The position numbers were made by a program, and so were the translations under genes. A stretch of 63,733 nt of DNA, counting the filler, from Calcarisporiella thermophila CBS 279.70 (lineage: Eukaryota > Fungi > Calcarisporiellomycota): NCBI RefSeq assembly GCF_041956535.1. It is 7 parts of 7 records of this genome, joined end to end, with 100 filler letters (N's around TTAATTAATTAA, not from the genome) between each part and the next. Parts side by side here need not be neighbours in the genome. Positions count along the whole stretch, not along the records: positions 25,249 to 42,886 come from NW_027192209.1; 6 more parts are not named here. One strand, given 5' to 3'. This document shows, one piece after another, positions 20,761 to 42,886 of this stretch. Within the stretch, counting starts at the first letter, position 1, and each line of letters opens with the position of its first letter. Under the pieces are notes generated by a model. That model saw nothing but the letters and a program-made list of their open reading frames with translations. It was not told where the DNA came from and made no database searches.

Positions 20761-20920
20761 TCTTAATACTGGGGTGAAGGATAAAATGATAAATTGTAAA
20801 AATATTTTTCATTGTAATACGGAAGAGACAGATTATATATATATTTTACCAGAATAAATCTTTTTTCTCTAGAATCTTATTTAGAGATATGTAAGTATAA
20901 TACGAGTATGACGCTTTTAT

Positions 20921-20964
20921 GATTTAGGCGTATATTTGATTTAGGCGTATATTTGATTTAGGCG
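20921..20964. repeat. 17-bp tandem repeat, about 2.6 copies
   Basis: Unit gatttaggcgtatattt in the MT/P450 divergent intergenic region. Confidence 0.85.
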
Positions 20965-21674
20965 CAAATATGATAATGCAATCTATTAATAAGTTGCTGG
21001 TTATGTGCAAATATAATGATGCGCCTCTGTTTATTATACTAATATGAATACTTTTTTAGTATTGTTTAGCCTGATCACATCAGTAAACTTTTTCGTTTTA
21101 CATTTCTAAAGTTAGGAAAAAAATCCTTATTATGGTTGTATTGAAACCACAACGGCATATATGTAATATAATGCAACCGTCTCTATGAAAAAAAAAAAAA
21201 AATGCTTAAATGCTTCAATTATCCAATCAAAATTTAAACCTGTTGCCAAATTAGTCGATTCTAGGCTGGAAAATACTACCCGAGAAAATGGACTTCAATT
21301 AATCGGGCCAAATAATAGAAATATCCCGATTGGCCAAACTCAAAAGGAACGGGGAGGATTTAAAATCTGATAGTAGAGTGAGCATTCTTTCTTTTACACT
21401 GACGGAATGGCTAGATCTTCTATAAATTAGGCTTCAAGTTTTAGTTTAGATATTTGAAATAAATATAGGCGTGATAAGAAAAACACTCATTTTTCTAACT
21501 CTCTTTACAGCCTACTGTATTTTTGAATTGATGTTCTAGATTAATACCTTATTCTATTTAGTTCGGAGTCAAATAATAAAAATTTGAAATAGCATAATTG
21601 AAAATTTACATAATATAAATAATCTGAGGATTGAACCTGGATTTTTTTTACAATTATTTCTTCAAAATTTTATC

Positions 21675-23798: not shown

Positions 23799-25313
23799 TT
23801 GCTCACACCGGTTACCGTTGGGCTAAGTATAATGTCATCCCAAGATGACCATGCTGGCGAGGTCTCTCTTCGAGCGGAGATGGAAATTCTTAAGTCTATG
23901 CTTGAGGAAATCAAGTCTAAACTGGAAGAGAACCGAGATGAGGAACGCGACGAGACGAGCAGCGAAAGCAGTGGTACTGCAGAAGATGAGCCTGACGAGC
24001 TCATATACGCTGCTAAGGCCAAACACTACCAAAGGATCCCACAATGGATGATGGACGCGTTCCCTCAAATCCTGGACCCCATTTTTTCACCCGAACACAA
24101 AATTCGGGACAGGGACCTTCGCGCAGAATGGTGGGCCCGCGCGCCAGCCATTCGCGATCAAGTTTATGACGCGCCAGCGATGCCAAGCAGCTTGCTTCAA
24201 GAGGCATCACATCAATCCAAAGCAAAAGATCGTTCACTGGCAGACTTCCAATCTCGTCTGGCCTTATCTACGAGAATAATCGACGCGCTTTTTCTTTCGG
24301 TCGCGAGATTCGTTGAAAATAATCGCGACGTGTTCCCAGATACTCTTTGCCAATATTGGCTGCAACTATATCGGGACATCACTTTTCAGATGCGAGACCA
24401 TCTCGCTACAATGTCAGAGTCAAGACTCGCAGAAATCAGACAAGCGGGTCAGTATAGCGCCAGCCTCCGCTATACAACTCCGGAGCACACCCTCATCCCC
24501 GAGGAGGTGGCCAGAGAATTCGCTAAGGAACGGAGAGCTGCATCCAAATCAAAAGTGAAGACGCGTAAGCAGCGTACAAGTTATAGAAATTCCAGGAAAC
24601 AGAGCGGAATCCGTAGCCGTTCGTAAAAACAGATTTAAACAAAATTCAAAAAAAGGATAATAAAATACTGTTGGAGAACGACCAGGCATGATCTAAGTCC
24701 GGATAGTTGTTGTGTTACGACGGTTATTTCATACTTATACAAATATGTATAAGCAAGTATCTTATCATCATTATTAGTCATCATCTCCTATTCTATCATA
24801 TATATATAGGATGTGCTTTCTCTCTTTTGAATTCTCTACTGGTGTGTGTTATTTGTGTTATCCCTTCTATCTGTCTTCTTTCCTTTTATTAATATACTCT
24901 TAATCAGTTCCAACAGGAGCCCGCAAGCTAACAAAACCAAGGCCGCTACTTAAGGACTCATTGGACATTACTTCAATATTCAATGAGCTTATGAGATGGG
25001 GACCTTCCACCAATATAAAAGCGAGAGATCTGAGGCGAAAACTGTGTTTCCTATGGGGCTTATGCCTTTTCGCTAGAGCTTCGGACTTGTATCGCATCGA
25101 CCCGGGGAGTATCATTTTGAGAGAAGATGGTCAACTGACCATCCTCTCNNNNNNNNNNNNNNNNNNNNNNNNNNNNNNNNNNNNNNNNNNNNTTAATTAA
25201 TTAANNNNNNNNNNNNNNNNNNNNNNNNNNNNNNNNNNNNNNNNNNNNTTTTATCCAATAAATCGGCCTCATCATCCTGAAGCGTGGACTGCTGACAAAG
25301 TCCGCAGTCTATT
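23799..25313 (+). mobile_element. Internally deleted DIRS-like element: gag-like ORF, tyrosine-recombinase fragment, terminal repeat across gap
   Basis: ORF 23799-24626 resembles gag-like ORF 57141-57692 (YDAPxM...D..LA); YR fragment DLRRKLCFLWGLCLFARASDL (24961-25148); repeat at 25258-25313. Confidence 0.75.
25149..25248. other. Artificial assembly linker
   Basis: N44-TTAATTAATTAA-N44. Confidence 0.97.
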
Positions 25314-25790
25314 TGAACTTATTCTATAGTGATTTTTGGTCTAACTTTCTACATTTTTAATAATATTCAAGAGTCTATAAGTGATCTATGCTGTAGCAGA
25401 ACGTGCGCTGCATATTTTTGAAATAAAATGAGAATAAAAATTAAAATAAAAAATAATGTGAAATGTTGCTAATTGTATAGGTCATTATTTAGTTCCCATG
25501 CTTGGGGGTGTGAAGGTATTTATCAACAACGTCAATCGAGTGAGTTATTTCAATATAGTTCTAAAGGTAAGAAGCAGATACGAAATATTCCGTTTTCGAG
25601 ACCATTTTCGCACTTGCAATCATGTATAAGCAATAGATAATAATATATTTAATGCATCAGAAGAGAATGGTAGAAATAATAAGAAATAAATAGCAATAGA
25701 ATACAGAGTACAAAGGGATCGTAAACTTTTGATACTAGAGTTTCTACGAAAAAAAAAAAAAACCAAATAAAAACAGACACAACAGCTAGG

Positions 25791-27989
25791 TTAGTCAATA
25801 AGAGGCGTGTTGCCATAAAGATTAGCATAACTGCCCAGTGCCCAGATGGAAAAGTGGAACTTGTAGTTCGGATAACGCATTCCGCCTGGAGGGGCGAAAA
25901 CTCCCTCTAGGCCACCCGGAAGCCACTCTCCGGTCTCCTGCTGTTGCCTCATGAGATAGATGATTCCACGCTTAATGGCTTCGGTATTGCTGCACTTAGC
26001 TGCCATCAGAGCGAGAACGGCATATGCAGTGTTAGTGACCTGGCTACCATCTGGGGATTGGACATAAGCTTTTGCCTTAATACTTTCGAGCGACTCGCCC
26101 CACCCGCCGTCCGGGTTCTGGTGTTTGAGCAAGAAGTCACATGCTTTTTTGCTTGCAGCAAAGTTGTCAGCGTATTTGCCGGCGTAGGACAGACCTTGCA
26201 GGGCAAACATAGTTGCATACGTGAAGCATACTCCCCAGCACGCGTACCAGCCGCCATTCTCTTGCTGGCTAGACAGCAAATATTTTACGCAGCGGTCGAT
26301 GCAGTGTTCAATTTCCTTCGTTCGGTAATCAGGATAGGCCTTAGAAAAAGTCGCCAGGCCCATAATAACCGAGCCAGTGCACTCAGGGTACAGGTTTTCA
26401 GTCATGACATCTTCATATAGCTCAGTAATATTAAAGTACTCCATAAGTTTGGGGGCACGGATAGGCTCGTAAGCAGAATATCCTCCACCTGGGTTCTCCA
26501 TCTCTAACACCAGATCCACTGCTTGCTCCAGACGCTCGTCGGATATCAGTTTGGGTACGATATTAGCCTGTTGCAGAAGCACGATAACCTTGACTGCCTC
26601 AATTGTAGTATCTGAGACAGCGTACGACTGATCGTGTGTGCTGAATGGCCAAGCACCTTTTGTGGGCTGCCTGTAGGTGCGTTCCATCGCACGTGGGTTC
26701 TCACGAATCTGTGTGCTCTCGATGAACTCGAGTGCCTTGCGCATGATTTCTCGGTTCTCTTCGAGGGTGGCTAACCCGGCGTCGAACGCAGCCTGTACAG
26801 TAAATGTGGTGTCCCACAGCTGGGTTCCGTTGGTGCCGGAAGAAGCCAACCCTTCGCGGCACAACCACATGGGATCGATGATACGCTCACGCATGCCCCG
26901 GATCCAGTGACTGTCGCGACCATGTGCATGGTACATCGCCAGCATGTTAGAAGCAAAGCTCACCGGAGCGATGCACAGGTAATGGGTGTTTGTTACTTCG
27001 AGCTCGATCTGGAACTGTGCTTCGCGGAGCGCGAGCTTGCGAAGGAACGGAATCTTCAGTGCTTCGTAGGTGTCTAACGCCTTAGTGAATGCGCGCCGGT
27101 ACCATGTGTCAGGTGTGTAGCGATCGGCGCTGCTGATGTTGTCCCGTTGCGCATACCAATCGATACTGTCGTACGGCTGGTCGTAGAGCTCCTTGCGTAG
27201 CGCGTTCGTCAGGTCGTTCAGCGGCATCTTGAACCGATGGCCATACAGATAGCTCATGCTGACAAAAACGTTGCGTGTGTGCACCCACCATTTGCCTGGG
27301 TTGAGTGGTGAAAAGGTTGGGGCCAACAAAGGCTCTGGGGGTAGGGGGTGCATGCCCTCCCACTCGTAGACGCCGAGTACGCATAGCCAGAACTTGCCCC
27401 ACGTTGGGATTGCACGCGCGCTGCCCAGCTCGTGCAATCTGCCTCGCGCCTTGGCCAATACCGGATGATTAGGACCCAAGCCGAGGATACGCAACATAAT
27501 GTAGTTCATAGCAGTGCCAAACACAGTAGAGTTGCTTTGGATGAACAGTCCCCACCCGCCTTCGTCTTCATTGGCCATGTTCAGCAAGTAACGGCAGAAT
27601 TCTTTTTTGATGTGCTCGTCAAAGTCAATGCCCATGATATAAGATGCAATTACGATGCCGCTAGTTACAAAGAGCGGGCCATCATCATTGCAAGCCCAGT
27701 GACCATCCTCAGCCTGCAGTCGCTTGAAGAATTCCCAGCCGTTTTTTGCTGCCTGCATGGGTTTCATTGCTTTCGGAAGTTTGAGCATGTCCAATGGCAA
27801 CCCTAGCCAATACTTCTCCAAAAAACTCTGTGGCCGCCTCTTGACCTCTTCGTCGTCGGTCAGGTATTCCCAGACGTGACGTCCATTGTAAACGTTGAGT
27901 CTCCACCGCCTGAGATCTGTACGGAACTCGCTTGCTGCTTTGTTGTCAGTAAAGCAGGTCTGCACGCTTTCAACGCTGCTATCTGTCAT
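25791..27989 (-). CDS. helA: 2,3-oxidosqualene cyclase, protostadienol synthase type (HelA/FusA/PdsA-like), intronless, 732 aa
   Basis: QW repeats (LQAEDGHW, QQENGGW, HQNPDGGWGES, QQETGEW), WWVHTR, SDTTIE catalytic motif, and C-terminal EGVFAPPGGMRYPNY, the signature that separates protostadienol synthase from lanosterol synthase (NKSCAIS). Confidence 0.93.
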   Translation of the reverse strand: MTDSSVESVQTCFTDNKAASEFRTDLRRWRLNVYNGRHVWEYLTDDEEVKRRPQSFLEKYWLGLPLDMLKLPKAMKPMQAAKNGWEFFKRLQAEDGHWACNDDGPLFVTSGIVIASYIMGIDFDEHIKKEFCRYLLNMANEDEGGWGLFIQSNSTVFGTAMNYIMLRILGLGPNHPVLAKARGRLHELGSARAIPTWGKFWLCVLGVYEWEGMHPLPPEPLLAPTFSPLNPGKWWVHTRNVFVSMSYLYGHRFKMPLNDLTNALRKELYDQPYDSIDWYAQRDNISSADRYTPDTWYRRAFTKALDTYEALKIPFLRKLALREAQFQIELEVTNTHYLCIAPVSFASNMLAMYHAHGRDSHWIRGMRERIIDPMWLCREGLASSGTNGTQLWDTTFTVQAAFDAGLATLEENREIMRKALEFIESTQIRENPRAMERTYRQPTKGAWPFSTHDQSYAVSDTTIEAVKVIVLLQQANIVPKLISDERLEQAVDLVLEMENPGGGYSAYEPIRAPKLMEYFNITELYEDVMTENLYPECTGSVIMGLATFSKAYPDYRTKEIEHCIDRCVKYLLSSQQENGGWYACWGVCFTYATMFALQGLSYAGKYADNFAASKKACDFLLKHQNPDGGWGESLESIKAKAYVQSPDGSQVTNTAYAVLALMAAKCSNTEAIKRGIIYLMRQQQETGEWLPGGLEGVFAPPGGMRYPNYKFHFSIWALGSYANLYGNTPLID

Positions 27990-29822
27990 AGTTTATTTGT
28001 GTAGGTTTATGATTGTGTGTGTAAATATATATGGCTGAGAAGCTGTATGTAATAGTATGAAAAACTATAGAGTGAACAGACAAAAGTGCATTAAAATATG
28101 ATCACTATGACAGGAGAATCAAGTGTAAGAAAGAAAACTCTATATACAACAACCGAAGTGGTAGTTAGTGATAAAGTCCCGGGGAGTTCGATAAAAGCGG
28201 TTAGGTCTTACTTCATATTGCCCTGCGGTGTTATTGGGTAGGTATCCTAAGAGAGGAAAAATCGGAGCGGTGAGCCTCCTCTTTTAGTGGCGAATCTTCA
28301 GTAAAGTGGGGCAAGTTGTACCGGAACAAAAATGGCTAAATTCAAATTCGTCGGAATCATGACTCATTGCCGAATCACCATTCAGCTGGGGCCAATTCAA
28401 TAATAAGCCCACCGTATCCGAAGATTCATTCGAAATGGGCTAGACAGTCACTAGCCCATTCTTCACGATCTCACCCTTCTTTCTCTTTGGAAGGCTAAGG
28501 TATATTACCGCAACATATCGGACTACAGAATTCCCCATGTATGTCCCTTAACGCATGTTCGTTTTCTTGCAGGCAATTGACGGATGACTCCCGAAACCAC
28601 TACATTTGAAAAGTGCATCGATGTCAGAACTTGCAAATAAAAGAGGCGGAGCTGTAAGAGGCAAAGCACAATGATTTTCTATGTATTGAGAATTATGAAA
28701 CTCTACAATAATTTGCACGTCATTTTCACTGTCGAAAATTTTGATACGCATTTGATGAGATGGAAATAAAATATCAGCCGCAACGTCACCTATGTAGTAT
28801 TTGGCAAATGCTTAAATTTCAATCATAATTTGCACTGTGTTTGACACAGAATCAAAGGCAACATGTTGCATAGAAAATTAAAAGTTGAAAGCTTCAACCA
28901 ACAAAATAAACATGGAAAGACGTGGAAACATGGTTTTTAATGGGGTTTTAGGTTAACAACACAAATATGCTTAACTCTTTCCGGCCGTTTGAAATTCGAA
29001 TTTTAAAATTTTAGAAAGAGAAGGTTGTGAAACGATTTACCTTTGAATTGTACTTCTCGGAACGCTAATGCAGAGATTCGGATGCTGGGCGGGTGTAGCG
29101 AGATCGAGATCAGGAGAGAGTTAGTGCGTGACGAGGAGGCCCAGATTAATGAATGTGAACCTTGCGTGCCTGGTATTAGCTCAGAAAACTTATTCCATAC
29201 CAGAATCGTCTCCTTCCTATAGTCATCCTAACCCAATTGTGTGACTGCGTTGCTTTTTTCCTCAATCGGTTACCAAGTCAACTGAGTTGTCTCTAGAGGT
29301 TGTAGGTAGGAAGCTGCCACGAGTCATTATTTTTCTTCCAGAGCACGAATTCTAACTAATATGTTTGTATCATATCCGTTTCTTGCTTCAATTGAAACTT
29401 GGGCAAGAAAAATTTAATTTGCAACCCAAAATATTGGTTACATTCATATATAGTACAATTAGGTAATCTGTGGTATTTCTACGTTACTTTCAGTCCAAGT
29501 TTTTACATATTCTGTCATATTGCCTTTTATCTACGTATTCCTTTGTCTTGCCCGGGTTTTTAATTGTTTTCCAATTCAATTGGATTTTAAGCATTGATTC
29601 TCAACAAGAGACAAGAATGTAAACTTTTAGCATTAAAAATTAGAAATATTGGCACCAAGTTCATACAGCCCAATTAATATAACATCATTATGAATTTACA
29701 TTTTTGCCAGTTTTATAATGAATGAAATTTTTGAGGAAAAAGAAGTAATATGTTATTAGCTTAGTAATCGCAATTGTAAGTGATAAAGGAAGAAAAACAA
29801 AAAAAGTGTTGAACAAATATCT

Positions 29823-31403
29823 TTAAACCTCGGTACGTTTAGTGATAATCATACGACAATCACGCTCTGGTTTGGCGGGGAATGAAGCAATGAAGCACTT
29901 CGCGGGCAACAACTTAGGAAGTCCATCTTCGTCAACATTGTGTGGACCGAAGATACTATCCTTGGGGAGAGAGATGTTATAGTCCTTGAGTATGTTTGCT
30001 ACGATAGCTAGCATCTCAACCCACGCGAGGTTGCGACCAATGCAGAAGCGATGTCCAAAAGAGAAGGTGAATAGATTGCGCTTGGCCACATCGTTGCCCA
30101 AGAATCGAGTTGGATCGAAGCGGCGAGGGTTTTCCCAGATGTCTTTGTGCATGTTGGGGGAGCGCAAGTTTACGTAAATTTCCACGCCCGGAGGAATATA
30201 GTGGCCCTGGATCGTTATACCTTTCGAGTAGGAAATACGGGGTGTCAATCCAGAAGTAGTAGGAGACTGACGTAGTGCCTCGTAGACACAGGCTTCGACG
30301 AATGGCAACTGGTTACGGACATCGGAATAGGTGATGAGGTGGTCGAGGGGGAATTGGCTGCGAACTTCCTCGACAGCGCGGCGAAGATGCTCGGGGTAGA
30401 GCAGCAACAGATGAAGGGTATACATTATTGCAGAGGAGGTTGTCTCGCTTCCGGCAAGCATCATCATGATACTCTCAGACTGCACTTCATGAGGAGTCAT
30501 CTTGATTTTGGACTCGGGGTCTTCAGCATCGATAAAAGCTTGCAACATGTCGATTGGCTTTTCGTATTTCTCCTCGGCCAAGAGCTTCTTGCGCATATCA
30601 ACAGATTCCTTGCTATAAACGGCCAAATCCTGGTATAATCTCTTCCAAGGTTGGATGATGACGGAGAAAGGCAACACCGCGAGAAGAAGGAGGACGATAG
30701 GGTTGTCCAAGAGTGTCATGGTTGCGCTTGACCACTTGATGACAGAAGTGCTGCCTTTAAACAGAGAATTGAATTTCCGTCCGAACGCTAATGCACTCAT
30801 GATATCGAAAGTGGCAAGCTGGGTATCAATTCGGTAGTTGACCTCGGTGGGTTTGCCGTCATTCTTCGCAATCAGCTCATCCCACTTGTATTTGATAGCC
30901 TGGATGCCATGACGAAGAATCAGTGGCTCCATCTTGCTCAAGAAGGTGTAGTTGAAGTAAGGGCCGATTTGTCGTCTCCTGCGATTAACAAGTTCGGGTT
31001 CTTTGAGCGATACAATGTTAGGGGTACCATAATCTTCGAAAATATCGAAAAAGTCGGCCTTTCTAAAGTCCTGGGAGCTAAGGACAGCACGGATATCAGA
31101 TGGGTTACTGATACAAACACCATTCGGCTTGAATACGTAGACATCACCGTAGGTTTTGCAGTCGGCTTGAACAATGTTATCGACGTTGCCAGAGAAATTG
31201 GCCAGGTTACCACGTTTTTCAGTGATACGAGCGAGAAGGGGGCCAGGGATATTGCGTAGAGGTGAGAAAAATAGTGCGTAGATGAGACGCCAGGCCACCA
31301 GAAGGCAAAACAAAGTAGCCAGGGTACGAGCGTACCCAAACTCATGGAGGGCAGCTTGAACTTGGGCAGTCAGGTTCAGCCAGTTGATGCTGAAAGCTAG
31401 CAT
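29823..31403 (-). CDS. Cytochrome P450, HelB/CYP5081-like paralog 1, intronless, 526 aa
   Basis: Start MLAFSINW matches paralogs 2 and 3; LAGSETTS, EALR, FSFGHRFCIG heme motif; family assignment from recall and context. Confidence 0.9.
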   Translation of the reverse strand: MLAFSINWLNLTAQVQAALHEFGYARTLATLFCLLVAWRLIYALFFSPLRNIPGPLLARITEKRGNLANFSGNVDNIVQADCKTYGDVYVFKPNGVCISNPSDIRAVLSSQDFRKADFFDIFEDYGTPNIVSLKEPELVNRRRRQIGPYFNYTFLSKMEPLILRHGIQAIKYKWDELIAKNDGKPTEVNYRIDTQLATFDIMSALAFGRKFNSLFKGSTSVIKWSSATMTLLDNPIVLLLLAVLPFSVIIQPWKRLYQDLAVYSKESVDMRKKLLAEEKYEKPIDMLQAFIDAEDPESKIKMTPHEVQSESIMMMLAGSETTSSAIMYTLHLLLLYPEHLRRAVEEVRSQFPLDHLITYSDVRNQLPFVEACVYEALRQSPTTSGLTPRISYSKGITIQGHYIPPGVEIYVNLRSPNMHKDIWENPRRFDPTRFLGNDVAKRNLFTFSFGHRFCIGRNLAWVEMLAIVANILKDYNISLPKDSIFGPHNVDEDGLPKLLPAKCFIASFPAKPERDCRMIITKRTEV

Positions 31404-31455
31404 TGTCAGAAGTGTGAAAAAGCTCCTAAAGAACTGGATGGCTGCTTTGTAGTAG
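31404..31455 (-). promoter_or_regulatory. Conserved 5' leader shared by the three cluster P450s (copy 1)
   Basis: ctactacaaagcagccatccagttctttaggagctttttcacacttctgaca-ATG; homologous to 34781-34832 and 35698-35750. Confidence 0.75.
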
Positions 31456-31800
31456 GAAAAAAAGTAAGTGTTTTTTAAGAAAGGGAAGAAAAAACAGAAC
31501 GAGAACGTAAGGAGTGTGAGTGTACCTCGGGATCTGCAGAGGCTTCGCATCGGAGAAAGAGGATGGATCGAGAACTTAGTAGTGTAACATGGCAAATGGA
31601 TCACCAGATAGAGTTGATGATTCATCGGTTCCAGAATCATACTCCAGTAAGGTGCCGAAAATTCGTAACTAACCCTATGCGTAAGTGACTCTCCGCATCC
31701 TTATTTCTAACTCAACTCTTAAGTCCTTGCGCCACTGACATTCCTATCTCGCTAAATTTTTTTAGCTAAAACCAGCTGTTACCAGCTCACACATTTAACT

Positions 31801-32580
31801 ATGTCAAACTTTACCAACGTAGCCATTGTCACTGGCGCTGCCCAAGGTGTGGGTCTTTGCATCGCAAAATCATTGGCCAAACGTGGTTATAAAGTGGTCA
31901 TCAGCGATGTTGAGATAGAGAAAGGCCAACAGGCTGCTGCCGAGGTTAACCAAGAGCACGGGGAGGGAACCGCCACATTTGTTCGCTGTGACCTGACCAG
32001 CACTAGCGACATCGATAACCTGCTTGCCACCGCCATCGAGAAGTTTGGCAGCTACTCTGTGCTTGTCAACAATGCTGGTTTTCTGCGCGCACCATTCATG
32101 GCCATCTCGGCCAAGGACATCGAAGCCACCATTGCTGTCAACCTCACTGCACCCATTTACGCGACACGGCAAGCCATCAGATATTGGAATGAAAACCCTC
32201 ATGTCAACGGCCAGGTAGTCAGCGTCACTTCGTCGTCTTCATTCAAAACTTATGCCAGTATCGCTGCCTACGGAGCAGCCAAGGCTGGTGCAGCACAGTT
32301 TACCTTCGCTTCTCGCGCGTTTGGGCCCAAGATCCGTATTAATGCCGTCGCACCCACAGCCATCGCCACCAATTTTGATAAGAACAAGATGCGAGTGGAA
32401 ACCGATAAAACCGGTCCTGGCTACGTACCAGAGGAAGAGATGCGTGCCATGGGCTTGAAGAGGTTGTCAGTCGAGGATGTTACTAATACGGTTCTCCGTT
32501 GCATCGACGACGACTCTTTGTACGGAAACGTCCTTTATATTGATGCTGTCGAGGGGCTTAAGATCAGGTCAGAATTTTAG
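31801..32580 (+). CDS. Short-chain dehydrogenase/reductase, HelC-like, intronless, 259 aa
   Basis: TGAAQGVG, CDLT, LVNNAG, TSSSS, YGAAK, INAVAP; divergent from P450 paralog 1. Confidence 0.9.
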   Translation: MSNFTNVAIVTGAAQGVGLCIAKSLAKRGYKVVISDVEIEKGQQAAAEVNQEHGEGTATFVRCDLTSTSDIDNLLATAIEKFGSYSVLVNNAGFLRAPFMAISAKDIEATIAVNLTAPIYATRQAIRYWNENPHVNGQVVSVTSSSSFKTYASIAAYGAAKAGAAQFTFASRAFGPKIRINAVAPTAIATNFDKNKMRVETDKTGPGYVPEEEMRAMGLKRLSVEDVTNTVLRCIDDDSLYGNVLYIDAVEGLKIRSEF

Positions 32581-33199
32581 TGCGTCTTCAGAGTCGAGTT
32601 AGGAGTTCAGATTAAGCTGGATTAACGCACGCAGCCAATCCCTTTTTTAAATAACCCTTTATTTTAGTAGAGATGGGTGAGCCAAGACTGTAGAAAAACT
32701 CAGTATAATAGAAACCTAGAAAATTATATCTGTGTAATTTGAAATCAAAACAAGCGATGCTACCAATACTTTTAAAGTAAAAATGTAAAATGCAGCATTT
32801 TGCGGTAACCAATTTCAATAACAAATATGATTCTCGTATTCATAGTAAAATTTTCAGAGGATCGCTTATACATAGCTGGATGCTGATGTAGGAAACTGGA
32901 CTCTCGGAAACTCTCCCCCTTGACTCCCAGTGATGCACATTGCACACTCCTGCCTCTTTTAACCATCATTTCCCCAATTCTTTATCTACTTTTTTAGCAA
33001 TTAAATTTTTCATTTTGATATCTACATCAACGATTTCATGTGCACAGTGTTATGTTAAACCGCACTTCAATGCGCGTGTATTTGACATTATATAAATAAA
33101 AAGGTAGGGTGGTGATATATTAACAATGGTGTGAGAAAGCTCAGTAAAATGTCAAAGAAATACGGTCGTGTGGCAGAAAGGAGAAGAACCCGAGAAAAA

Positions 33200-34780
33200 T
33201 TATGCCGCAATGCGCTTGGAGATTATCAGTCGGCAGTCGCGATCGGGATGTGTCGGTGCGAAGACGATGTGGCATTTAGAGGGCATCAGCTTCGGGACTC
33301 CATTCCCGTCAACATTGTGTGGGCCGAAAATGTTGTCCTCGGGAAGCGATATGTCATAGTCCTTGAGTAAGTTTGCGGCAATAGTCAGCATCTCAACCCA
33401 TGCGAGGTTGCGACCAAGACAAATGCGAGGCCCGTAAGAGAAGGCGAATACGTTGCGCTTAGCCTCTTCATTATTCATGAAGCGATCAGGGTTGAAGCGG
33501 TGAGGTTCATCCCAAAGATCCTTGCGAACGTTGATCGCGCACAGGTTAAAGGCAATTTCAACCCCTGGCGGAATGTAGTGGCCTTGTATGGTGATTCCTT
33601 TAGTGTATGAGATTCTGGGCATGAATCCAGATGTGATAGGTGAATAGCGTAGTACTTCGTATATGAATGCTTCAAGGTATGGAAGCTGGGTGCGACACTC
33701 GTTGTAGGTGATGAGGTGGTCGAGCGGGAATTGACTGCGCACTTCTTCGACAGCACGGCGAAGGTATTGTGGGTACAGAGTTAGCAGGTGGAGTATCCAG
33801 GTAAGAGAAGTGGAAGTCGTCTCGCTACCAGCAAGTTGCATGCCAACACTCTCGGCCTGCACCTCGAGAGGTGTCATCTTGATCTTGGACTCGGGGTCTT
33901 CAGCATCGATAAAAGCTTGTAGTAGATCTGACGGCTTACCTTCAGTGCTCTGTGCCAGGAATTCCTTGCGTAGAGCAACCGACTCTTTGCCAAATTCAAC
34001 AAAATCGCTATGCATCTTCAACCAAGGCCGGATGAGTAGAGAAAATGGGAATGAGGTGAGAAGGTTAAAATTTATTCGGACTCCCACGTATACCGCGGTT
34101 GCAGCAATCCAGTTGACTATTGTAGAGTTATTGTTGGCCAGCGAGTTGAATTCCCGACCGAAAGCCAGCGCGCTCATAATATCGAAAGTAGCAAGTTGCA
34201 GGTCATGGCGGTAGTTGATCTCGATGGGCTTTCCACCGTTCTCCGCAATTAACCCATCCCATTTGGCTTTGATCGCCTGGATGCCGTTGCGAAGAACCAG
34301 CGGCTCCATTTTGGATAGATACCCGTGATTGAAGTATGGGCCGATCAGGCGTTTTCTCCGACTGGCAAGTGACGGCTCGCTAAATGTCACTATATTGGCC
34401 ATGTAGGGATCGTTGAGGTCCCGATATATATCAATCTTTCTGAATTCTGGCGAACCAAGGACAGCCCTGATATCAGATGGGTTGGTGATGCAGACAGTGT
34501 TTGGTTTAGAGACGTAGATGTCGCCATATTTCTCGAAGTCTGCAATTGCCGCCTTAATTACCCTGGTAGGCGCACGATTGTATATGGCACGCTTATCAGT
34601 GATACGGGAGAGTGGCGGGCCTGGGATATTGTGCAGACGCGACAAAAAGAATGCGTAGGTTAATTTCCATGCCATCTGCAGACCCAACAAGGTTGCTAGA
34701 AAACGGATATACCCAAACTCATGGATGAATGAGTGAGCCTGAGTAAACAAGGCCGGCCAGTTAATGTTGAAAGCTGGCAT
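33200..34780 (-). CDS. Cytochrome P450, HelB/CYP5081-like paralog 2, intronless, 526 aa
   Basis: MPAFNINW start; LAGSETTS, EVLR, PDRF, FSYGPRICLG heme motif. Confidence 0.92.
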   Translation of the reverse strand: MPAFNINWPALFTQAHSFIHEFGYIRFLATLLGLQMAWKLTYAFFLSRLHNIPGPPLSRITDKRAIYNRAPTRVIKAAIADFEKYGDIYVSKPNTVCITNPSDIRAVLGSPEFRKIDIYRDLNDPYMANIVTFSEPSLASRRKRLIGPYFNHGYLSKMEPLVLRNGIQAIKAKWDGLIAENGGKPIEINYRHDLQLATFDIMSALAFGREFNSLANNNSTIVNWIAATAVYVGVRINFNLLTSFPFSLLIRPWLKMHSDFVEFGKESVALRKEFLAQSTEGKPSDLLQAFIDAEDPESKIKMTPLEVQAESVGMQLAGSETTSTSLTWILHLLTLYPQYLRRAVEEVRSQFPLDHLITYNECRTQLPYLEAFIYEVLRYSPITSGFMPRISYTKGITIQGHYIPPGVEIAFNLCAINVRKDLWDEPHRFNPDRFMNNEEAKRNVFAFSYGPRICLGRNLAWVEMLTIAANLLKDYDISLPEDNIFGPHNVDGNGVPKLMPSKCHIVFAPTHPDRDCRLIISKRIAA

Positions 34781-34832
34781 TGTTAGAAGCAAGAAAAAGT
34801 GCTTTAAGAACTCGATGGCTACTTTGTAGTAG
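34781..34832 (-). promoter_or_regulatory. Conserved P450 5' leader (copy 2)
   Basis: ctactacaaagtagccatcgagttcttaaagcactttttcttgcttctaaca-ATG. Confidence 0.75.
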
Positions 34833-35697
34833 CAAATAAAAGTTAGAGGGAAACAAGGAGAAATGAAAATAGGTGGTAAGTCCTAGCCATGTTAGTCATA
34901 ATTCCGCCCGCCTGCACACAATTTGTATCGAAGTTTGCCACGCAGTGTGAAGGGTGATTCATAATTCTCCCAGTTTGTCTGATGTGAATCCGCAAAATTC
35001 TAGTAGTGCACATGTCAAATCCAACTACAAGCGGGTAATGATGGAATTAATTAGACCATATAGTGTAACGTTGATACCGTGAATGGCGATTAACTTAACA
35101 GGGTCTTCGAAGGACAAAGCCACACGTCTAATTCGTCTGATCTATATCCACAAAGTTCGTGAACACAGGGCAAACCTAGTTTCAAGCGGAGGACTATTTT
35201 TGATCCAGTTTTACCTCGGATTAATATTGATTCATATATCTTAATTCCTCGCTCTCTTCAGAGCAGAGCGGGACAATACCAGAGGCCTCAGAATAAAGAA
35301 AAAAAAAATAACCTCTCAGCAAGCTATCTACGCACTAGCTTCAGGATTAGTTTGGACTCTCTCTCAGTGTGCTCTTTATTACATATACAAGAACCTCGCT
35401 TGTCCATAGACGAAGAGGCCTTCTCAGTAAAAGAATTCACGCAAATCCTATCTTTGCTTCCCCGTTATCTATTCTGTCTAATACGATTTAGTGGAAACAA
35501 TTTCGGACAAACAAGCGCAAATCCCGACCTTGGGAGGATTTACGATTATTTTGTGTAAGATTGCGTTGGGCGTTGCATATTCGTCAACCGCTACAGTCTT
35601 GCGGGGCTAAGGGAATGACTAATCTCCTATGCTTCTCCTTGCAGCTTTGCAGCGCCTTCCGACTTTTTTTTTCTTCCGCCCTTTTTCCTTTCTTTTT

Positions 35698-35750
35698 CTA
35701 CTACAAAGCAACCATCCCGTTCTTTTTGGCGCTTCTTCACATTTCTGGCG
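35698..35750 (+). promoter_or_regulatory. Conserved P450 5' leader (copy 3)
   Basis: ctactacaaagcaaccatcccgttctttttggcgcttcttcacatttctggcg-ATG; 1 nt longer than the other copies, so not an in-frame extension. Confidence 0.75.
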
Positions 35751-37334
35751 ATGCCAGCTTTCAGCATCAACTGGTTGGGCCAGCTTGCCCAGGTTCACGC
35801 CGTTCTCCACGAGCTTGGATATATCCGTTTGCTTGCAATATTGTTGTTTGGAGTGCAGGTGGCTTGGAAATTAACCTACGCATTCTTTTTATCGCCACTC
35901 CGCAATATCCCAGGCCCATTTCTTTCTCGCGTTACAGCTAGGCGCAGCGAATTCAAGGCTCTGTCTGGGAATGGAGAGAAAGCAACACAGCAAGACTACG
36001 AAAAGTACGGAGACATCTACGTGTACAAGCCAAATGTTATCTGCATCTGCAACCCGAAGGACATTCGGGCCGTGCTGAGCTCCAATCAATTCAGAAAAAC
36101 TGACTTGTATAAGATTTTCGAGTATCTGGGCATACCAAACGTGGCGACATTCACAGACCCAGTGCTTGCGAACCGCCGGAGGCGGCAGATCCACCCATAC
36201 TTCAACTTCACGTACCTAGGCAAAATGGAATCACTGATTCTCCGCCACGGTATCGAAGCGATTAAGACGAGGTGGGATGGGCTGATTGCGAAGAACGGCG
36301 GAAAGCCGATCGAGGTCAACTACCGCCACGACACGCAGCTCGCCACCTTCGACATCATCGGCGCATTAGTGTTTGGGCGTGAGTTCAATGCACTCGCAAC
36401 CAACAACATGTCTTATATCAATTGGGTTTCAGGTACTTTCTTCTATTTGATGCTCCGCAACAACTTCCCCTTGCTTGCCGTGTATCCCTTCTCGCTCCTT
36501 GTCAGGTCCATGAAAAAGTCGCATGATGAACTGGCGGAGTTCAGCAAGGAGTCGGTTGCCATGCGCAAGGAGCTGCTGGCTAAAGGGGTCGACGAGAAAC
36601 CCGCTGACCTACTGCAGGCGTTGATCGATGCAGAGGACCCTGAGTCCAAGTACAGGATGTCGCCTATCGAAGTGCAGACGGAGAGCGTTGGCATGCTACT
36701 TGGCGGGAGTGAGACGTCCTCCTCCGCAATTTCGTGGACGGTTCACTTTTTGCTATTGCACCCCGAGCACCTTCGCCGCGCCGTCGAGGAGGTGCGCAGC
36801 CAATTCGCGCCTGGTCACACCGTCACATTCAACGAGACTCGCGCCCACCTGCCATACCTCGAGGCCTGCATCTACGAAACTCTGCGCTATATTCCGGCAG
36901 GCACCGCCTCTTTCCCGCGAATCTCTCATTCTACCGGCATCACTATCCAGGGCCACTACATCCCGCCGGGCGTTGAGATCGCCGTCAACAAGTGGGCTGC
37001 CCACATCCACAAGGACTTCTGGGACGACCCGCTCACCTTCAACCCTGTTCGCTTCCTAGACAACGATGAGGCCAAGCGCAACATGCTTTCCTTCTCGTAT
37101 GGACAGCGCTTCTGCATCGGGCGCAACCTCGCATGGGTGGAGATGCTGCCCATCCTGGCCAACATGCTCAAGGACTACGACATTTCTCTTCCAGAGGGTA
37201 GCCTCTTCGGCCCCCACAACCTCGACGAGCATGGCCGTCCAAAACTTATGCCCACGAAGCCTTCTGTGTTCACCATGCCTGCCAACCCCGAGCGCGACTG
37301 CCGCATGATCGTCACCAATCGCTCCGAGGTATAA
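35751..37334 (+). CDS. Cytochrome P450, HelB/CYP5081-like paralog 3, intronless, 527 aa
   Basis: MPAFSINW start; LGGSETSS, ETLR, PVRF, FSYGQRFCIG heme motif. Confidence 0.92.
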   Translation: MPAFSINWLGQLAQVHAVLHELGYIRLLAILLFGVQVAWKLTYAFFLSPLRNIPGPFLSRVTARRSEFKALSGNGEKATQQDYEKYGDIYVYKPNVICICNPKDIRAVLSSNQFRKTDLYKIFEYLGIPNVATFTDPVLANRRRRQIHPYFNFTYLGKMESLILRHGIEAIKTRWDGLIAKNGGKPIEVNYRHDTQLATFDIIGALVFGREFNALATNNMSYINWVSGTFFYLMLRNNFPLLAVYPFSLLVRSMKKSHDELAEFSKESVAMRKELLAKGVDEKPADLLQALIDAEDPESKYRMSPIEVQTESVGMLLGGSETSSSAISWTVHFLLLHPEHLRRAVEEVRSQFAPGHTVTFNETRAHLPYLEACIYETLRYIPAGTASFPRISHSTGITIQGHYIPPGVEIAVNKWAAHIHKDFWDDPLTFNPVRFLDNDEAKRNMLSFSYGQRFCIGRNLAWVEMLPILANMLKDYDISLPEGSLFGPHNLDEHGRPKLMPTKPSVFTMPANPERDCRMIVTNRSEV

Positions 37335-38382
37335 ACCCACTTTGCGCTTCTTTTTTAATCTTCCTGTCTCGCCTTCTTGCTCTTAGACACTCATTTCCAA
37401 AAATTCTTCCTCGAGTCTGTACCATTTAAAGCACCACTCAATAATCCAGTACTAATAAAAGTTGAAGACACCAGATTTATATACTCAGCAAGCAGATTAT
37501 ACTTACAGCACCTTCTCTAATTTGTCGTCATAATTGCAATAAACACACATATTAAACCCTTTAGTGCCCATATCGATTGTAACATCAAAGTTCCTCAAAG
37601 TGCGCTAATAATTTTGGCATCGTAATTTTCAAAATACTACAATTAGATTTGATACGAAAAAGGATGAATATTTCATTATTTTACTTATTCAATCTAAGAG
37701 TGAATCTAACTGATAACCAGAGATATCGTAAGAGCTACAGAAGAGAAACGGATCATAAGCTACAGGACTATTACAGTCATGCTGAGGGGATTGGCTGCCT
37801 GCTTAGCAGAAAAGATTTTTTTATTATGAATGAGTGAGTATTTAACTGATCAAGACATTAATAGCCATTGTTCATCTCTTCCAGGATACTCCTTTTTGTT
37901 TGTAAGTATCCCAATGACCTGGCTTTGGTCTCCCTTCTTCGGATTTAGCTCTGCTCATATCTTTATTAGCTCCTTCCTTATATAGTAATTTCTATCTTAT
38001 TTTTGACTTAATGTCGACATGAACTCGGGAAGTATTTCCTATGCTTTTTTCCACACACACGTGGGTACCTCGCTCACACTCCTGAGATTCTATGAAAAAT
38101 CCACTGATTTCGAGTCCACCACTCTTTGACGTGGCTTATGCGACTTGATTTTCATGTTAAGAGCTAGCAGGAGCACAGTTGAACAAAGGAGAAATAAAAT
38201 AGGGGAACTGTGAGGTTGAATTTTTCTTTCCTATTTTTTCTTTCTCTCTTCATTCCTCCTTTCTTACTTCATCCCAACGCGTGAATATATATAGCATCAC
38301 CTTTTGCGGGAATACGTTTTTCCTAAATAGCCTGCTGGCCCAATCTCTCATATAACAGTTCATTACTGTTCTGACAGATGCA

Positions 38383-39852
38383 ATGGAGGCCTTCCAGCAT
38401 GGTGTAACAAGCAAAGCCTATCCTCTTTCGCCCTTGGACATTATCCCTAACCACCTGTATATCACGAATGTGTATTTTATTGAAAACACACTAAGCGATG
38501 GTGACGCCTTCATGCCTAGCGACGTTTTAAGGGAGTCATTCTACGGCGCACTTCAACAATATCCTATCCTCGCTGGCTATCTTCGTCGGAAGAGCTGGAG
38601 TAAAATGGAAATCGAAGTGGACAAGGACGATCTGAACATGCCCGAGTACGTTGAATCCGCCAGCGACGTTCACTTCAAGTCCCTCAGAGATCACCAGTTT
38701 CACAGGGACGCATGGCCGCGGGGGGTTAACATTGTTGACCCACGGGCGATACCCGACAGCAGCGGCTCTCCTAAGCTTCTCCGTGCGCATGTTTATCGGC
38801 TGGCAGAAAACAGTGGTGTCGTGATTGTCGTCCGCGCGTCGCACAGTGTTTTCGATGCCAAGGGGTACGTCTCGTTCATCAACGCCTGGGCCCAACTATG
38901 TCGCGAGAGTCTCGACCCAAACTTGCCGAGAACTCCTGTGAAGCCGCTCATCGATCGTAGCGTTCTCTATGAGCAATTACCTGCGGACGTAAGGCCGACA
39001 AGCAGCCCAGCAACGAGTGCCCGCGCGTGGCTCACTCCCATCCTGTCAATTTTTGTCCGGCTGGCGCTGAACCTGTATGTCATGGTTGCCCCCAAGCAGG
39101 CGGCCCCGGATTTCATTGAAAGCCATTTGTTCCGAATTTCCGGGGACTCGCTTCGCCGCTTGCGTGACAAGATCAGTGCGCTTGAGCCTAATAGCCCGCA
39201 TGTCTCCAACAACGACATAATCACGGCGCTCTTCACCATGGCGTTCGCCCAGAGCACCGAACAGTTGGCGGTACAAGCAAGTGCCAATGCTGGCTTCTTT
39301 TCAAAAGCGGTCAAGTACAGCAAGGATTTGATGGGCTCTGGCGAGAAGGGCATAAGCGCGATTGTTCCGTGTGATTTCCGCCACCGCATAGGAGTGCCAG
39401 AAAACTACACAGGAAGCTGCGCAATGGGTCTCTACGTCACTGCACCCAAAGAACTTTTGCTTAAGCCGATCACCCCAGAGTCCCTGGCCAAAGTTGCTGT
39501 GATTTCACGCAATACGATAGACCAGGTTGACAAAAAGCGCATTGAGCAGTTTATTAGTCGGGCTCTAAAGGTCATCAACCTGGTTGGGCACAAAGCAAAT
39601 GTGCTTTACTCCATGCTTGTGTGCCAGGCCTTTTCTAACCAGTCTCGGCTCAGATTCTACGACGCCGACTTTGGTCATGGCCAGCCTGCAAAAGTGGTGC
39701 CCATGGCATACTCCAACACCGTTGCCGTCGTCTTTCCTCCCGCACCACCAAGCAGTGATGACGTGGAAGTGTTCCTCACACTGCGCCCGAATGTAATGGC
39801 TAATTTGCTCAAGAAACAGGATCTTCAATCTTTTGCGACCATCGTTTACTAG
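38383..39852 (+). CDS. CoA-dependent acyltransferase (transferase/BAHD-like, HelD2/FusD-like), intronless, 489 aa
   Basis: LSPLD N-terminus, YPILAG, HSVFD (HxxxD), DFGHG (DFGWG-like). Confidence 0.9.
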   Translation: MEAFQHGVTSKAYPLSPLDIIPNHLYITNVYFIENTLSDGDAFMPSDVLRESFYGALQQYPILAGYLRRKSWSKMEIEVDKDDLNMPEYVESASDVHFKSLRDHQFHRDAWPRGVNIVDPRAIPDSSGSPKLLRAHVYRLAENSGVVIVVRASHSVFDAKGYVSFINAWAQLCRESLDPNLPRTPVKPLIDRSVLYEQLPADVRPTSSPATSARAWLTPILSIFVRLALNLYVMVAPKQAAPDFIESHLFRISGDSLRRLRDKISALEPNSPHVSNNDIITALFTMAFAQSTEQLAVQASANAGFFSKAVKYSKDLMGSGEKGISAIVPCDFRHRIGVPENYTGSCAMGLYVTAPKELLLKPITPESLAKVAVISRNTIDQVDKKRIEQFISRALKVINLVGHKANVLYSMLVCQAFSNQSRLRFYDADFGHGQPAKVVPMAYSNTVAVVFPPAPPSSDDVEVFLTLRPNVMANLLKKQDLQSFATIVY

Positions 39853-41204
39853 CTTCATCTGTATCTAGTATCTTCGGGCTGCAGTAAACGTTGGTTGCAG
39901 CTACCACATTTTTTCCCTCTCCCTTTTCTCTCTGATTTTTTGCGAGCCGAGTTTACACCTGTAAGCACCTTCTTTCTTCTCTTTTCATTCTTGAAATCAA
40001 CATGAAGTTAATCAGTGTCTTTAACCAGCCCTCAGATTCAGAGACAAAAAGGGTAACCTAGTTACTTTTATATCTTTTTCATAGACCTTCCCAGTTAATA
40101 CTCTGTTCTGAATAGTACCTCGATCTCACTTAACTATCAAAAATGGATATCACCTATTTTCCATTTAAAATATCGATTTCCTTATGTATTCAGCTCTTGA
40201 TGTTCAATTTCTCGCGATGAGGTGCAAAGGTCGTAGAAACTTGAGCAACATAGCGAATGCGATTGTAACGTACAACTATAATGTTCAGTTCGGTTCACCT
40301 CTCAGATTGATCGATGCATTTGTCAAAAGAACAATTTCTTTCTTAAATTCTTGTTCAAAGATGTGACTCAAAGAGGCTATCTTCTGCAGAGAGATAAAGA
40401 GGGAAAATTATTTGTCTCTTTTTTTACAAGTATTTTCAGGTTTATGCAAGGAGAGTAAAACTGTAACAAATAGTTCCAGAAACAATATAAAGCAAAGTTA
40501 AAGAGAAAATATTTAGTCGGGAAATAATTTATATTAATATGCAAATACAAACTTTCAAAAGATCTATTGTACACAGGTAGTATATTTTTCTATAAGATTC
40601 ATACAGGAACCCAGGTACTATATACAGTTTCGTCATGGTGATAAAAGTAATACGGCACGCCGATATTTAACTCTTCTTTTGAAACTATAATTCTTCGTTT
40701 TTCATTATCACAATTCTCTTCGCGAAAATTCAGTAATACATATCGAGCCATAAAATAATAAGATTGGATAAAAGAAATAAAAAAGAGAACAATGAGCATT
40801 GTAATGAGGCAAGAGTTGCATAAATATAACAGCTGTTTATATATTTTAGAACTTAGAATATCCAGGGTAAAAACTACAACAAGGCTTCTGTAAATATTGC
40901 TCAATTATATATGCATAAAATAATACAATAATATGTAAAATTTTCACGTTTGAAAAATTGAAGACTGTTTTTATGGATTAATATAACGGCTCGGCAGGTA
41001 AGCAGAATAATCTTAGTATAAAAAATAGGAGAAGAACAATAAGATGAAACAGATGTGTTTATTTAAAAAGGAAAATAATATGACTCTGGCATGTGTCTAG
41101 AAGTTCCAAGATCAATTGCAGAATTTCTTAATATAATTTTCATACTACACTGAGATTACATTAACACTTGATTCTCCCTTTGACAAGCAACATCATCTAA
41201 GTTG

Positions 41205-42392
41205 TTAACTCTTTTTGGCATATAACATACATCCATCGACCACAATGGTTGCTCCATTTGTGTATGCGCCAGCACGGGATGCTAGATAAATACAGGTTCC
41301 GGCTATATCCTCAGATTCACCAAAGCGACCAGCTGGAATTGCACTTTTAAGTTTATTCAAGAAGGCATCGTTGTCTTCCGAGACCAAGTCTTTTGTTAAC
41401 TCAGATCGGAAATATCCTGGCGCGATTGAATTCACGGTGATATGGCGATAGCTAAGTAGAGGGGCAAGCGCTTCTGTCATCCGGTGGAGAGCGGCTTTGG
41501 ATATATTGTATACTACATAACTCGGCATTGGTGTGTTGATCATTGCAGCAACAGAACCTATCATAATTACACGACTCGGATCTGCTTGGGTGCATTTAGC
41601 GGAAAGCAGCGGAATAAGTCTGTCAATGAAAAGAAATAAAATGTAGTAAAAAGTACTTCAGTATACTTTTTAAGGTTTTAGGTCGCATAGGGTAAAGCTT
41701 TGAGGATTCGAATCCATGAAGTCCAATATCAAAATTCCTACTTACGCCTTTGTTAAAAAATAAGGAGCTTTCAAGTTGATGTCAAAGAGATCATCCCAAC
41801 TCTCCTCGGTATAAGTGTCGAAATCTTGACTATTAGTTACTCCCGCATTGTTCACTAAAACATCGAGGCGATTCTCCTGTTTCATCAATTCTTCTACTAG
41901 CCTATTTATTCCATCTAGATTCTTCAAATCAGCAGGAATGCTAATGCATTGACCTGGCCCTTGTTCGTTTAATCTAGCAGCGACCTTGAGCAAGATATTT
42001 AGAAATGAGGTATTGAAAATTATTGCAATAATTCGTAAGCTATGAATAAAAGCATAGACAAGCAGCTTATTGTATTACCTGATTGCATACATCGGTTGAC
42101 CTGCTTGCAATGTAGACCTTAGCACCATTTGAAATGAAGCCCTAAACGCACAATGTCGGAGAAAATTATTATTCCTGAGTCAAAAAAAAAATTCATCTTG
42201 ATAAAATCCAAGGGAATTTGAGGAAAAATTCTTACATTGGCAATCATTTCTCCAATGCTAAACATGATTAGTGAATTGAATCTAATTAGCCTGAGCCCAC
42301 GATAGAATTGGAGCAAATTTTAGTTACCCTCGACTTCCACCAGTGACAAGCACCACTTTTCCTTTAACGCTAAACAACTTCGATATATCCAT
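41205..42392 (-). CDS. Classical SDR (3-oxoacyl reductase-like), 5 exons, host-type composition
   Basis: MDISKLFSVKGKVVLVTGGSRGIG, ADL, LVNNAG, GSVA, YNISK, VNSIAPG, IPAGRFG; in-frame GT-AG splicing. Confidence 0.88.
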
Positions 42393-42886
42393 TATGAAAT
42401 TGCAAAAAAAAAATACTGCCTTGAGGACTGTGAAATTATTAAGTGGGAGAGTCTTTGCGATTTTCGGGATATTATATACCAAATACTTGCTAAGATTTAG
42501 AATGGGAAGACTAGGCAAAGGTATATTGAACCTTTATACTAAACACCAGTGTCGAAATTCGAATAATGCCTATTATTTAAAATAATACAGTATTAAGAAA
42601 TTTAGATAAGAGTAAGATTATGAAATTCCGTAGAGATTGAAAATTCCTTACAATTCGTTAAATACAAAAAAAAAACATTAAGAATAATATAAGAAAACAA
42701 CCTAATTAGCAAGCGTAATTGTGATGTTATCGGAGTTGAACAGAATTCGCTTTCCAGTACTATTGCTACCAAAGAAACTGAAATATAAGATGGTATGGCA
42801 GTATCCGAATTTCAGCTTAATTGAAGTCACTTTTTCATTGGGAACAGGTGTATGACGTGTCTGTGGCTGAATACCCTTTTAAATAT

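Follow-up and report, generated by a model that had tools for sequence, protein, structure and literature searches.

Early-diverging fungi are regarded as poor in secondary-metabolite clusters; to our knowledge, the fusidane pathway has so far been reported from ascomycete moulds only, and the clusters found by Li et al. in 2020 were reportedly all in Pezizomycotina. The nearest described systems are the hel cluster of Aspergillus fumigatus (helA, B1-B4, C, D1, D2 and E; PMC5696383), the fus cluster of Acremonium (Waltergamsia) fusidioides (PMC6437595) and the cep pathway of Acremonium (Hapsidospora) chrysogenum (PMC8245791), which have in common a conserved core of helA, B1, B2, B4, C and D2 (PMC6437595; PMC8245791). 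The functions of the Hel enzymes were tested in A. oryzae (PMC5696383), the fus steps are described in PMC6437595, and the target of the class is bacterial elongation factor G (EF-G; PMC6437595). According to the summary in PMC9729932, several transfers of fusidane clusters between fungal classes were described by Li et al. 2020. Sun et al. 2022 found HelA-like cyclases in Zoopagomycota and Mucoromycota, with tailoring homologues absent or non-clustered, and held that basal fungi probably do not produce helvolic acid (PMC9602595). Here we analysed a window of 63,733 nucleotides from Calcarisporiella thermophila CBS 279.70 (NCBI RefSeq assembly GCF_041956535.1), which joins seven parts of seven records, together with the scaffold around one of its pieces (positions 25249-42886, from NW_027192209.1). 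We consider it very probable that C. thermophila carries a seven-gene fusidane (29-nor-protostane) cluster with a putative route to a 6,7-oxidised fusidane, and that this cluster was acquired horizontally, has a Kickxellales-derived cyclase and split off before the ascomycete copies diversified. The genus Calcarisporiella is not mentioned in the fusidane literature among the matches listed.

Gene content of the cluster

Six genes lie within 14 kb of one contig and a seventh on the adjoining contig of the same scaffold; all seven are intact and intronless, with their catalytic motifs kept. An initial annotation of the window had described an intact oxidosqualene cyclase (OSC), cytochrome P450 (P450), short-chain dehydrogenase/reductase (SDR), P450, P450 and acyltransferase, in that order, on a gap-free contig, and had read them as a fusidane-type cluster. 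We recovered the same order as six long uninterrupted reading frames with Pfam matches and catalytic motifs, and gene trees placed every gene in Hel/Fus/Cep clades with strong support. The term gap-free holds for the piece, which contains no N, and fails for the scaffold, where gaps of 4,472 N on the left and 1,889 N on the right flank the piece and a fourth cluster P450 lies past the left gap. The six genes had also been equated with the conserved core, which has to be corrected: the last of the three P450s falls in the HelB3/CepB4 clade, the piece does not include the ortholog of HelB4 (the C-21 oxidase), and therefore those six genes alone should not yield the 21-oic acid. With the adjoining contig included, all six core orthologs are present (HelA, HelB1, HelB2, HelB4, HelC and HelD2), and the cluster, as read from its sequence, comprises this core plus the HelB3/CepB4-clade oxidase. 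The hel genes of A. fumigatus were named by their published order (locus L004; PMC5696383).

The OSC, a HelA/FusA ortholog (25791-27989, minus strand; 732 amino acids, intronless), gave a strong match to the SQHop_cyclase N and C Pfam families, is 70% identical to A. fumigatus HelA and contains the catalytic Asp460. At 34 positions that we take to form the active site, on the basis of human lanosterol synthase and mapped via alignment, it matches HelA at 33, compared with 23 matches in a Coemansia cyclase and 18 in a Rhizopus lanosterol synthase. It also contains the APPGGMR segment, which has been linked to protostadienol formation (PMC8227516). The HelA-like active site and this segment support the proposal of the initial annotation that the enzyme is a putative protostadienol synthase. 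Its identification as a lanosterol synthase was ruled out by the active-site residues. The GVFAPPGGMRY pattern was unmatched in one subclade of the HelA-type cyclases that evolves fast and has members in Emydomyces, Hortaea, Chaetomium, Coniochaeta and Lepidopterella; these enzymes possibly belong to other triterpene pathways. A metagenome scan for cyclases returned two distant ones only.

Each of the four P450s falls in its own ortholog clade with support of 100/100. P450a (29823-31403, minus strand; 526 amino acids), the ortholog of HelB1/FusB4 and the predicted enzyme for conversion of the C-4beta methyl to a carboxylate, is 69% identical to HelB1 and has 28 of the 35 B1-diagnostic residues. 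P450b (33200-34780, minus strand; 526 amino acids), the HelB2/FusB2 ortholog and predicted C-16 hydroxylase, is 65% identical to HelB2, with 22 of 28 diagnostic residues. P450c (35751-37334, plus strand; 527 amino acids) is of the HelB3/CepB4 clade, predicted to be a late C-6/C-7 oxidase type; it is 56% identical to HelB3, the 6beta-hydroxy-7-oxo oxidase of the hel cluster, has the I-helix GGSE as in HelB3, and is sister to the HelB3 and CepB4-like branches together, before their split. Strong p450 Pfam matches, the heme Cys and the ExxR motif were found in all three. P450d, the HelB4 ortholog, lies outside the piece on the next contig (MU987582.1, 633528-635108; locus L001 18473-20053), 6.3 kb from the OSC; it is 64-72% identical to HelB4 and has 30 of 37 diagnostic residues.

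A tract shared by P450c and P450d (35380-35930, plus strand) takes in the promoter of P450c and its initial ~60 codons. Over this stretch, about -370 to +180 relative to the start codon, the DNA of the two genes is 85-98% identical, compared with ~60-77% over the remaining coding sequence. This tract is a recent gene conversion, and therefore both contigs belong to one genome. A short 5' element situated ~50 bases ahead of the start codon is also common to the P450 paralogs (31428-31463, 34806-34863 and 35667-35725), a remnant of paralog duplication or conversion. Besides this element and A-rich words, no promoter motif common to the cluster was found; a bacterial promoter scan, of no relevance here, gave results at chance level.

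The SDR (31801-32580, plus strand; 259 amino acids, adh_short Pfam) is the HelC/FusC2 ortholog, predicted to carry out C-3 oxidation and decarboxylation. It has the TGxxxGxG and YxxxK motifs, is 66% identical to HelC and 76% to the Patellaria copy, and falls in the HelC clade (100/100). In a search of 1.84 billion representatives its top match was Metarhizium HelC (63%), with full-length non-HelC matches at 28-44%; its nearer relatives include many Zoopagomycota and also animal and unplaced sequences. The NCBI annotation gives this gene as 310 amino acids in two exons (locus L001 5410-6427). We did not prefer that model: the intronless 259-residue frame, whose start and length agree with those of HelC and of the Patellaria copy, is probably correct. 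The acyltransferase (38383-39852, plus strand; 489 amino acids, Transferase Pfam), the HelD2/FusD ortholog and the predicted enzyme of 16-O-acetylation, carries the HxxxD and DFGHG motifs. It is 48-54% identical to HelD2, 40% to FusD and 31% to HelD1, and falls in the HelD2 clade (100/100).

Comparison with known clusters and predicted product

Orthologs of helA, B1, B2, B3, B4, C and D2 are present in Calcarisporiella at 48-72% identity, and all six complete genes at the A. fumigatus locus that we examined are intronless, as are the seven described here. Read toward the cyclase, the order is B3(-) C(+) B2(-) B1(+) A(+) in A. fumigatus and B3(-) B2(+) C(-) B1(+) A(+) in Calcarisporiella, a difference of one inversion of the B2-C block. 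The fusidane cluster moved as a unit. Unlike in A. fumigatus, no helD1 or helE was seen in the sequenced part of the 49-kb region, helB4 lies on the opposite side of the cyclase, P450c falls outside the HelB3 clade proper, and the host is outside Dikarya. The fus cluster has the six core genes in common with Calcarisporiella, which differs in its B3-type P450 and in that the C-11 hydroxylase FusB1, of a distant P450 family, and the extended SDR FusC1 were not seen; all four cluster P450s fall in the B1-B4 clades, with the 4.5-kb gap unseen. The cep system has in common the core and a C-6/C-7 oxidase of the HelB3/CepB4 clade (P450c is 55% identical to the CepB4-like protein). In Calcarisporiella this oxidase lies within the cluster, unlike the H. 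chrysogenum CepB4-like gene, which is on a different contig from its core genes, and CepC2 and CepD2 were not seen nearby. Within the sequenced portion of the 49-kb region, HelE, a second transferase and an extended SDR were neither called nor found by tblastn. The absence of HelE and of a second acyltransferase, as stated in the initial annotation, is nevertheless not assertable, because the cluster is interrupted by a 4.5-kb gap and the remaining genome was not searched. Fusidane clusters were also seen near the base of the family in Patellaria atrata and on a 70-kb Joint Genome Institute (JGI) metagenome contig; in Patellaria there is in addition an extended SDR of the epimerase type, resembling FusC1.

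We infer all catalytic steps, as well as expression and the product, by orthology to the Hel and Fus enzymes. The OSC would convert 2,3-oxidosqualene to protosta-17(20)Z,24-dien-3beta-ol. P450a would then turn the C-4beta methyl group into a carboxylate by oxidation, P450b would hydroxylate C-16, the acyltransferase would place an acetyl group on the 16-OH, and P450d would oxidise C-21 to the acid. Oxidation at C-3 by the SDR is expected to trigger decarboxylation, giving the common 3-oxo intermediate, and P450c would act last in a ring-B oxidation, most likely at C-6/C-7. The predicted product, which goes beyond the common intermediate itself, is a 16-acetoxy-3-oxo-fusidane that is oxidised at C-6/C-7 and non-acetylated there, like compound 17 of Lv et al., and that would block bacterial EF-G. 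The same seven-gene set from A. fumigatus gave compound 17, a 6-hydroxy-7-oxo fusidane (PMC5696383), which had a minimum inhibitory concentration of 1 ug/mL on S. aureus and was stronger than helvolic acid (Lv et al.). Of all the predicted steps, that of P450c is the least certain. HelB3 and the CepB4-like enzyme differ in their C-6/C-7 outcome (PMC8245791).

Gene trees and origin

The OSC tree was built from 74 of 120 listed matches, with redundant Mucorales, basidiomycete and partial rows omitted; Neolecta supplied the sole ascomycete lanosterol synthase, and Pezizomycotina ERG7 was not among the matches listed. In this tree the Calcarisporiella enzyme branched as the sister of every ascomycete and environmental cyclase of HelA type (support of 100/99 to 100/100). 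The whole fusidane cyclase clade in turn had the Coemansia and Dipsacomyces cyclases as its sister group, within Kickxellomycotina, and a site-mixture model agreed. Approximately unbiased (AU) tests rejected grouping of the OSC with Aspergillus (p 1.5e-5), Patellaria (1.2e-6), Mucoromycotina (1.8e-6) or Neolecta (1.2e-7), as well as a clade of Kickxellomycotina cyclases without the fusidane clade (p 0.001). Vertical descent of the OSC from a Mucoromycotina cyclase was thereby ruled out. In six of the seven gene trees the Calcarisporiella copy stood as sister to every other fusidane copy, with the acyltransferase tree as the exception. P450a-d were each sister to the rest of their own ortholog clade, also when residues 1-70 were removed and under a site-mixture model.

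The nearest non-cluster P450s and acyltransferases were from Kickxellales. In this order (Coemansia, Dipsacomyces, Martensiomyces and Linderina), housekeeping OSCs form the sister group of the fusidane cyclases at 60-67% identity, the CYP5081-like P450s are at 42-50% and the acyltransferases at 29-34%, and the genes are intronless like those of the cluster. Unlike the fusidane cyclases, the Kickxellales OSCs have a lanosterol-type C-terminal motif (NHSC-); the Coemansia cyclase has this type of motif and housekeeping neighbours. The P450 and transferase trees were rooted on Kickxellales, and nesting was therefore tested for the OSC only. Given the nested cyclase clade and the Kickxellales-nearest P450s and acyltransferases, the fusidane pathway looks to have been built from Zoopagomycota genes and spread horizontally. 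The trees allow a Kickxellales-like donor to both lineages, or passage via Calcarisporiella or an unsampled early ascomycete. We lean slightly toward a broader scenario in which the pathway came together outside Ascomycota out of genes of the Kickxellales type (a sterol cyclase that had undergone duplication, P450s in a tandem array and an acyltransferase), Calcarisporiella is the nearest living ancestral seven-gene form with four specialised P450s, and all ascomycete clusters (those for helvolic acid, for fusidic acid and for cephalosporin P1) descend from a cross-phylum transfer. Convergent assembly from an imported cyclase and host P450s, SDR and transferase was ruled out: the genes are one-to-one Hel orthologs, and a clade of the four P450s was rejected (AU p 3e-5). 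No Kickxellales proto-cluster was found at the four loci examined, where the genes are unclustered. In Martensiomyces pterosporus, five intronless CYP5081-like P450 genes stand in tandem with no cyclase nearby (locus L013 1183-11620). Dipsacomyces acuminosporus has three cyclase records, one with altered active-site residues (His to Tyr and Thr to Ile; locus L009 10001-11492), hinting at cyclase diversification in Kickxellales.

Alternative readings, genomic setting and implications

Several observations weigh against a basal, horizontally acquired cluster with the predicted product. Grouping of P450d with Patellaria was not rejected (AU p 0.18), support for the basal position of the SDR was 89/81, and the acyltransferase nested with the Patellaria and environmental copies (98/95), its basal placement being rejected (AU p 0.005). 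In addition, P450d is linked to the cluster only via the scaffold gap, Ile463 beside the catalytic motif of the OSC is unusual (Ala, Ser or Gly elsewhere), and P450c has only 23 of 55 B3-diagnostic residues; because this is under half, its regiochemistry is uncertain. The tree conflicts could mean that a Pezizomycotina donor, for example one near Patellaria, gave rise to a cluster now resident in Calcarisporiella, with the basal position an artefact of slow evolution, paralog conversion and long outgroup branches. Conversion between P450 paralogs is demonstrated, and every other named cluster that we found is ascomycete. We nevertheless judge such a donor unlikely: the OSC has no cluster paralog and a short outgroup branch, and both of its nested placements were rejected; nested placements of P450a, P450b and P450c were also rejected (AU p 0.006-0.007 and 4e-8), and the P450 placement survived the two checks described above. 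The acyltransferase conflict touches only the root, which attaches to a branch ~1.8 changes per site in length, and its unrooted arrangement resembles the other trees. A separate doubt concerns the end product. A different regiochemistry of P450c would give another protostane, the cluster could be silent, or HelE, HelD1 or FusC1/CepC2 encoded in the gap or elsewhere could lead to helvolic acid or a cephalosporin-P1-like compound. The gap within the cluster, the unlinked CepB4-like gene of H. chrysogenum and the branching of P450c ahead of the HelB3/CepB4 split make this possible, but the searches for further tailoring genes in the sequenced part of the 49-kb region came back empty and the seven frames are intact with catalytic motifs, and we regard a different or missing product as doubtful.

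Contamination, or mis-scaffolding of a piece from another fungus, appears a very improbable source of the contigs. In its favour, the region is gap-rich and close to a scaffold end, the GC content at third codon positions (GC3) of the cluster genes (0.54-0.70) exceeds that of two flanking genes (0.38 in the flanking SDR), and atlas searches with two flanking genes were uninformative and gave no phylogenetic placement of the host. Yet the OSC sequence is recorded once, on the 672,666-bp GenBank scaffold MU987582.1 (GCA_041956535.1), whose proteins outside the window carry RefSeq accessions and the name Calcarisporiella thermophila; locus tags 4065 and 4073 exactly bracket the seven called genes of the piece, namely the six cluster genes and a spliced flanking SDR. 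This unrelated SDR (41205-42392, minus strand) shares the gap-free contig and has four AT-rich GT-AG introns, intergenic GC is alike (about 0.27-0.42) on either side of the gaps, the cluster genes have no counterpart in a known ascomycete lineage or in another sample (OSC cluster size 1), and the conversion tract binds the two contigs to one genome. C. thermophila is placed in Calcarisporiellomycota by NCBI and, in a phylogenomic study, is sister to other Mucoromycotina (10.1101/2022.06.24.497490). From the scaffold protein names and this taxonomy, the host, the heat-loving mould C. thermophila, is therefore neither an ascomycete nor a member of Dikarya, which upholds the non-ascomycete host proposed in the initial annotation. 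The RER1, SYM1, HMGR and IDI genes that it had named for placing the host are not on the piece that carries the cluster.

The flanking SDR, searched one exon at a time with no joined model, gave Pfam SDR matches exon by exon (the NCBI model has 267 amino acids) and is probably a resident host gene outside the cluster. The contig with the HelB4 ortholog also carries, immediately downstream of that gene, a DUF4436 membrane-protein gene (locus L003 11925-12963). Beyond the right gap is an intronless NRT2-like nitrate/nitrite transporter gene with a GC3 of 0.67 (locus L002 18548-20056); no nitrate or nitrite reductase was called beside it, and its closest atlas clusters are mostly Ascomycota and Basidiomycota. 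A called 592-residue gene without a Pfam match lies near the scaffold end (locus L014 12060-14093), and degenerate ~165-bp repeats (85-92% identity) stand on either side of a small gap (locus L003 about 19930-21530).

With its seven genes, the locus represents a variant of a cluster family already known, but found in a lineage where it was not expected and at the base of that family, and its genes appear from the trees to branch before nearly all known fusidane copies. An intact cluster in Calcarisporiella contradicts the 2022 survey's view of basal fungi, and it would show transfer of a whole cluster across fungal phyla and allow the origin of an antibiotic class in clinical use to be rooted. 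The change from a lanosterol-type cyclase to a protostadienol synthase becomes testable by comparing the Coemansia and Calcarisporiella OSCs, as does the ancestral HelB3/CepB4 activity, and enzymes from a thermophile may serve combinatorial fusidane biosynthesis. If the Kickxellales-type origin is true, C. thermophila would be the earliest example of fusidane production beyond Dikarya to be recognised, and its end product may be new.

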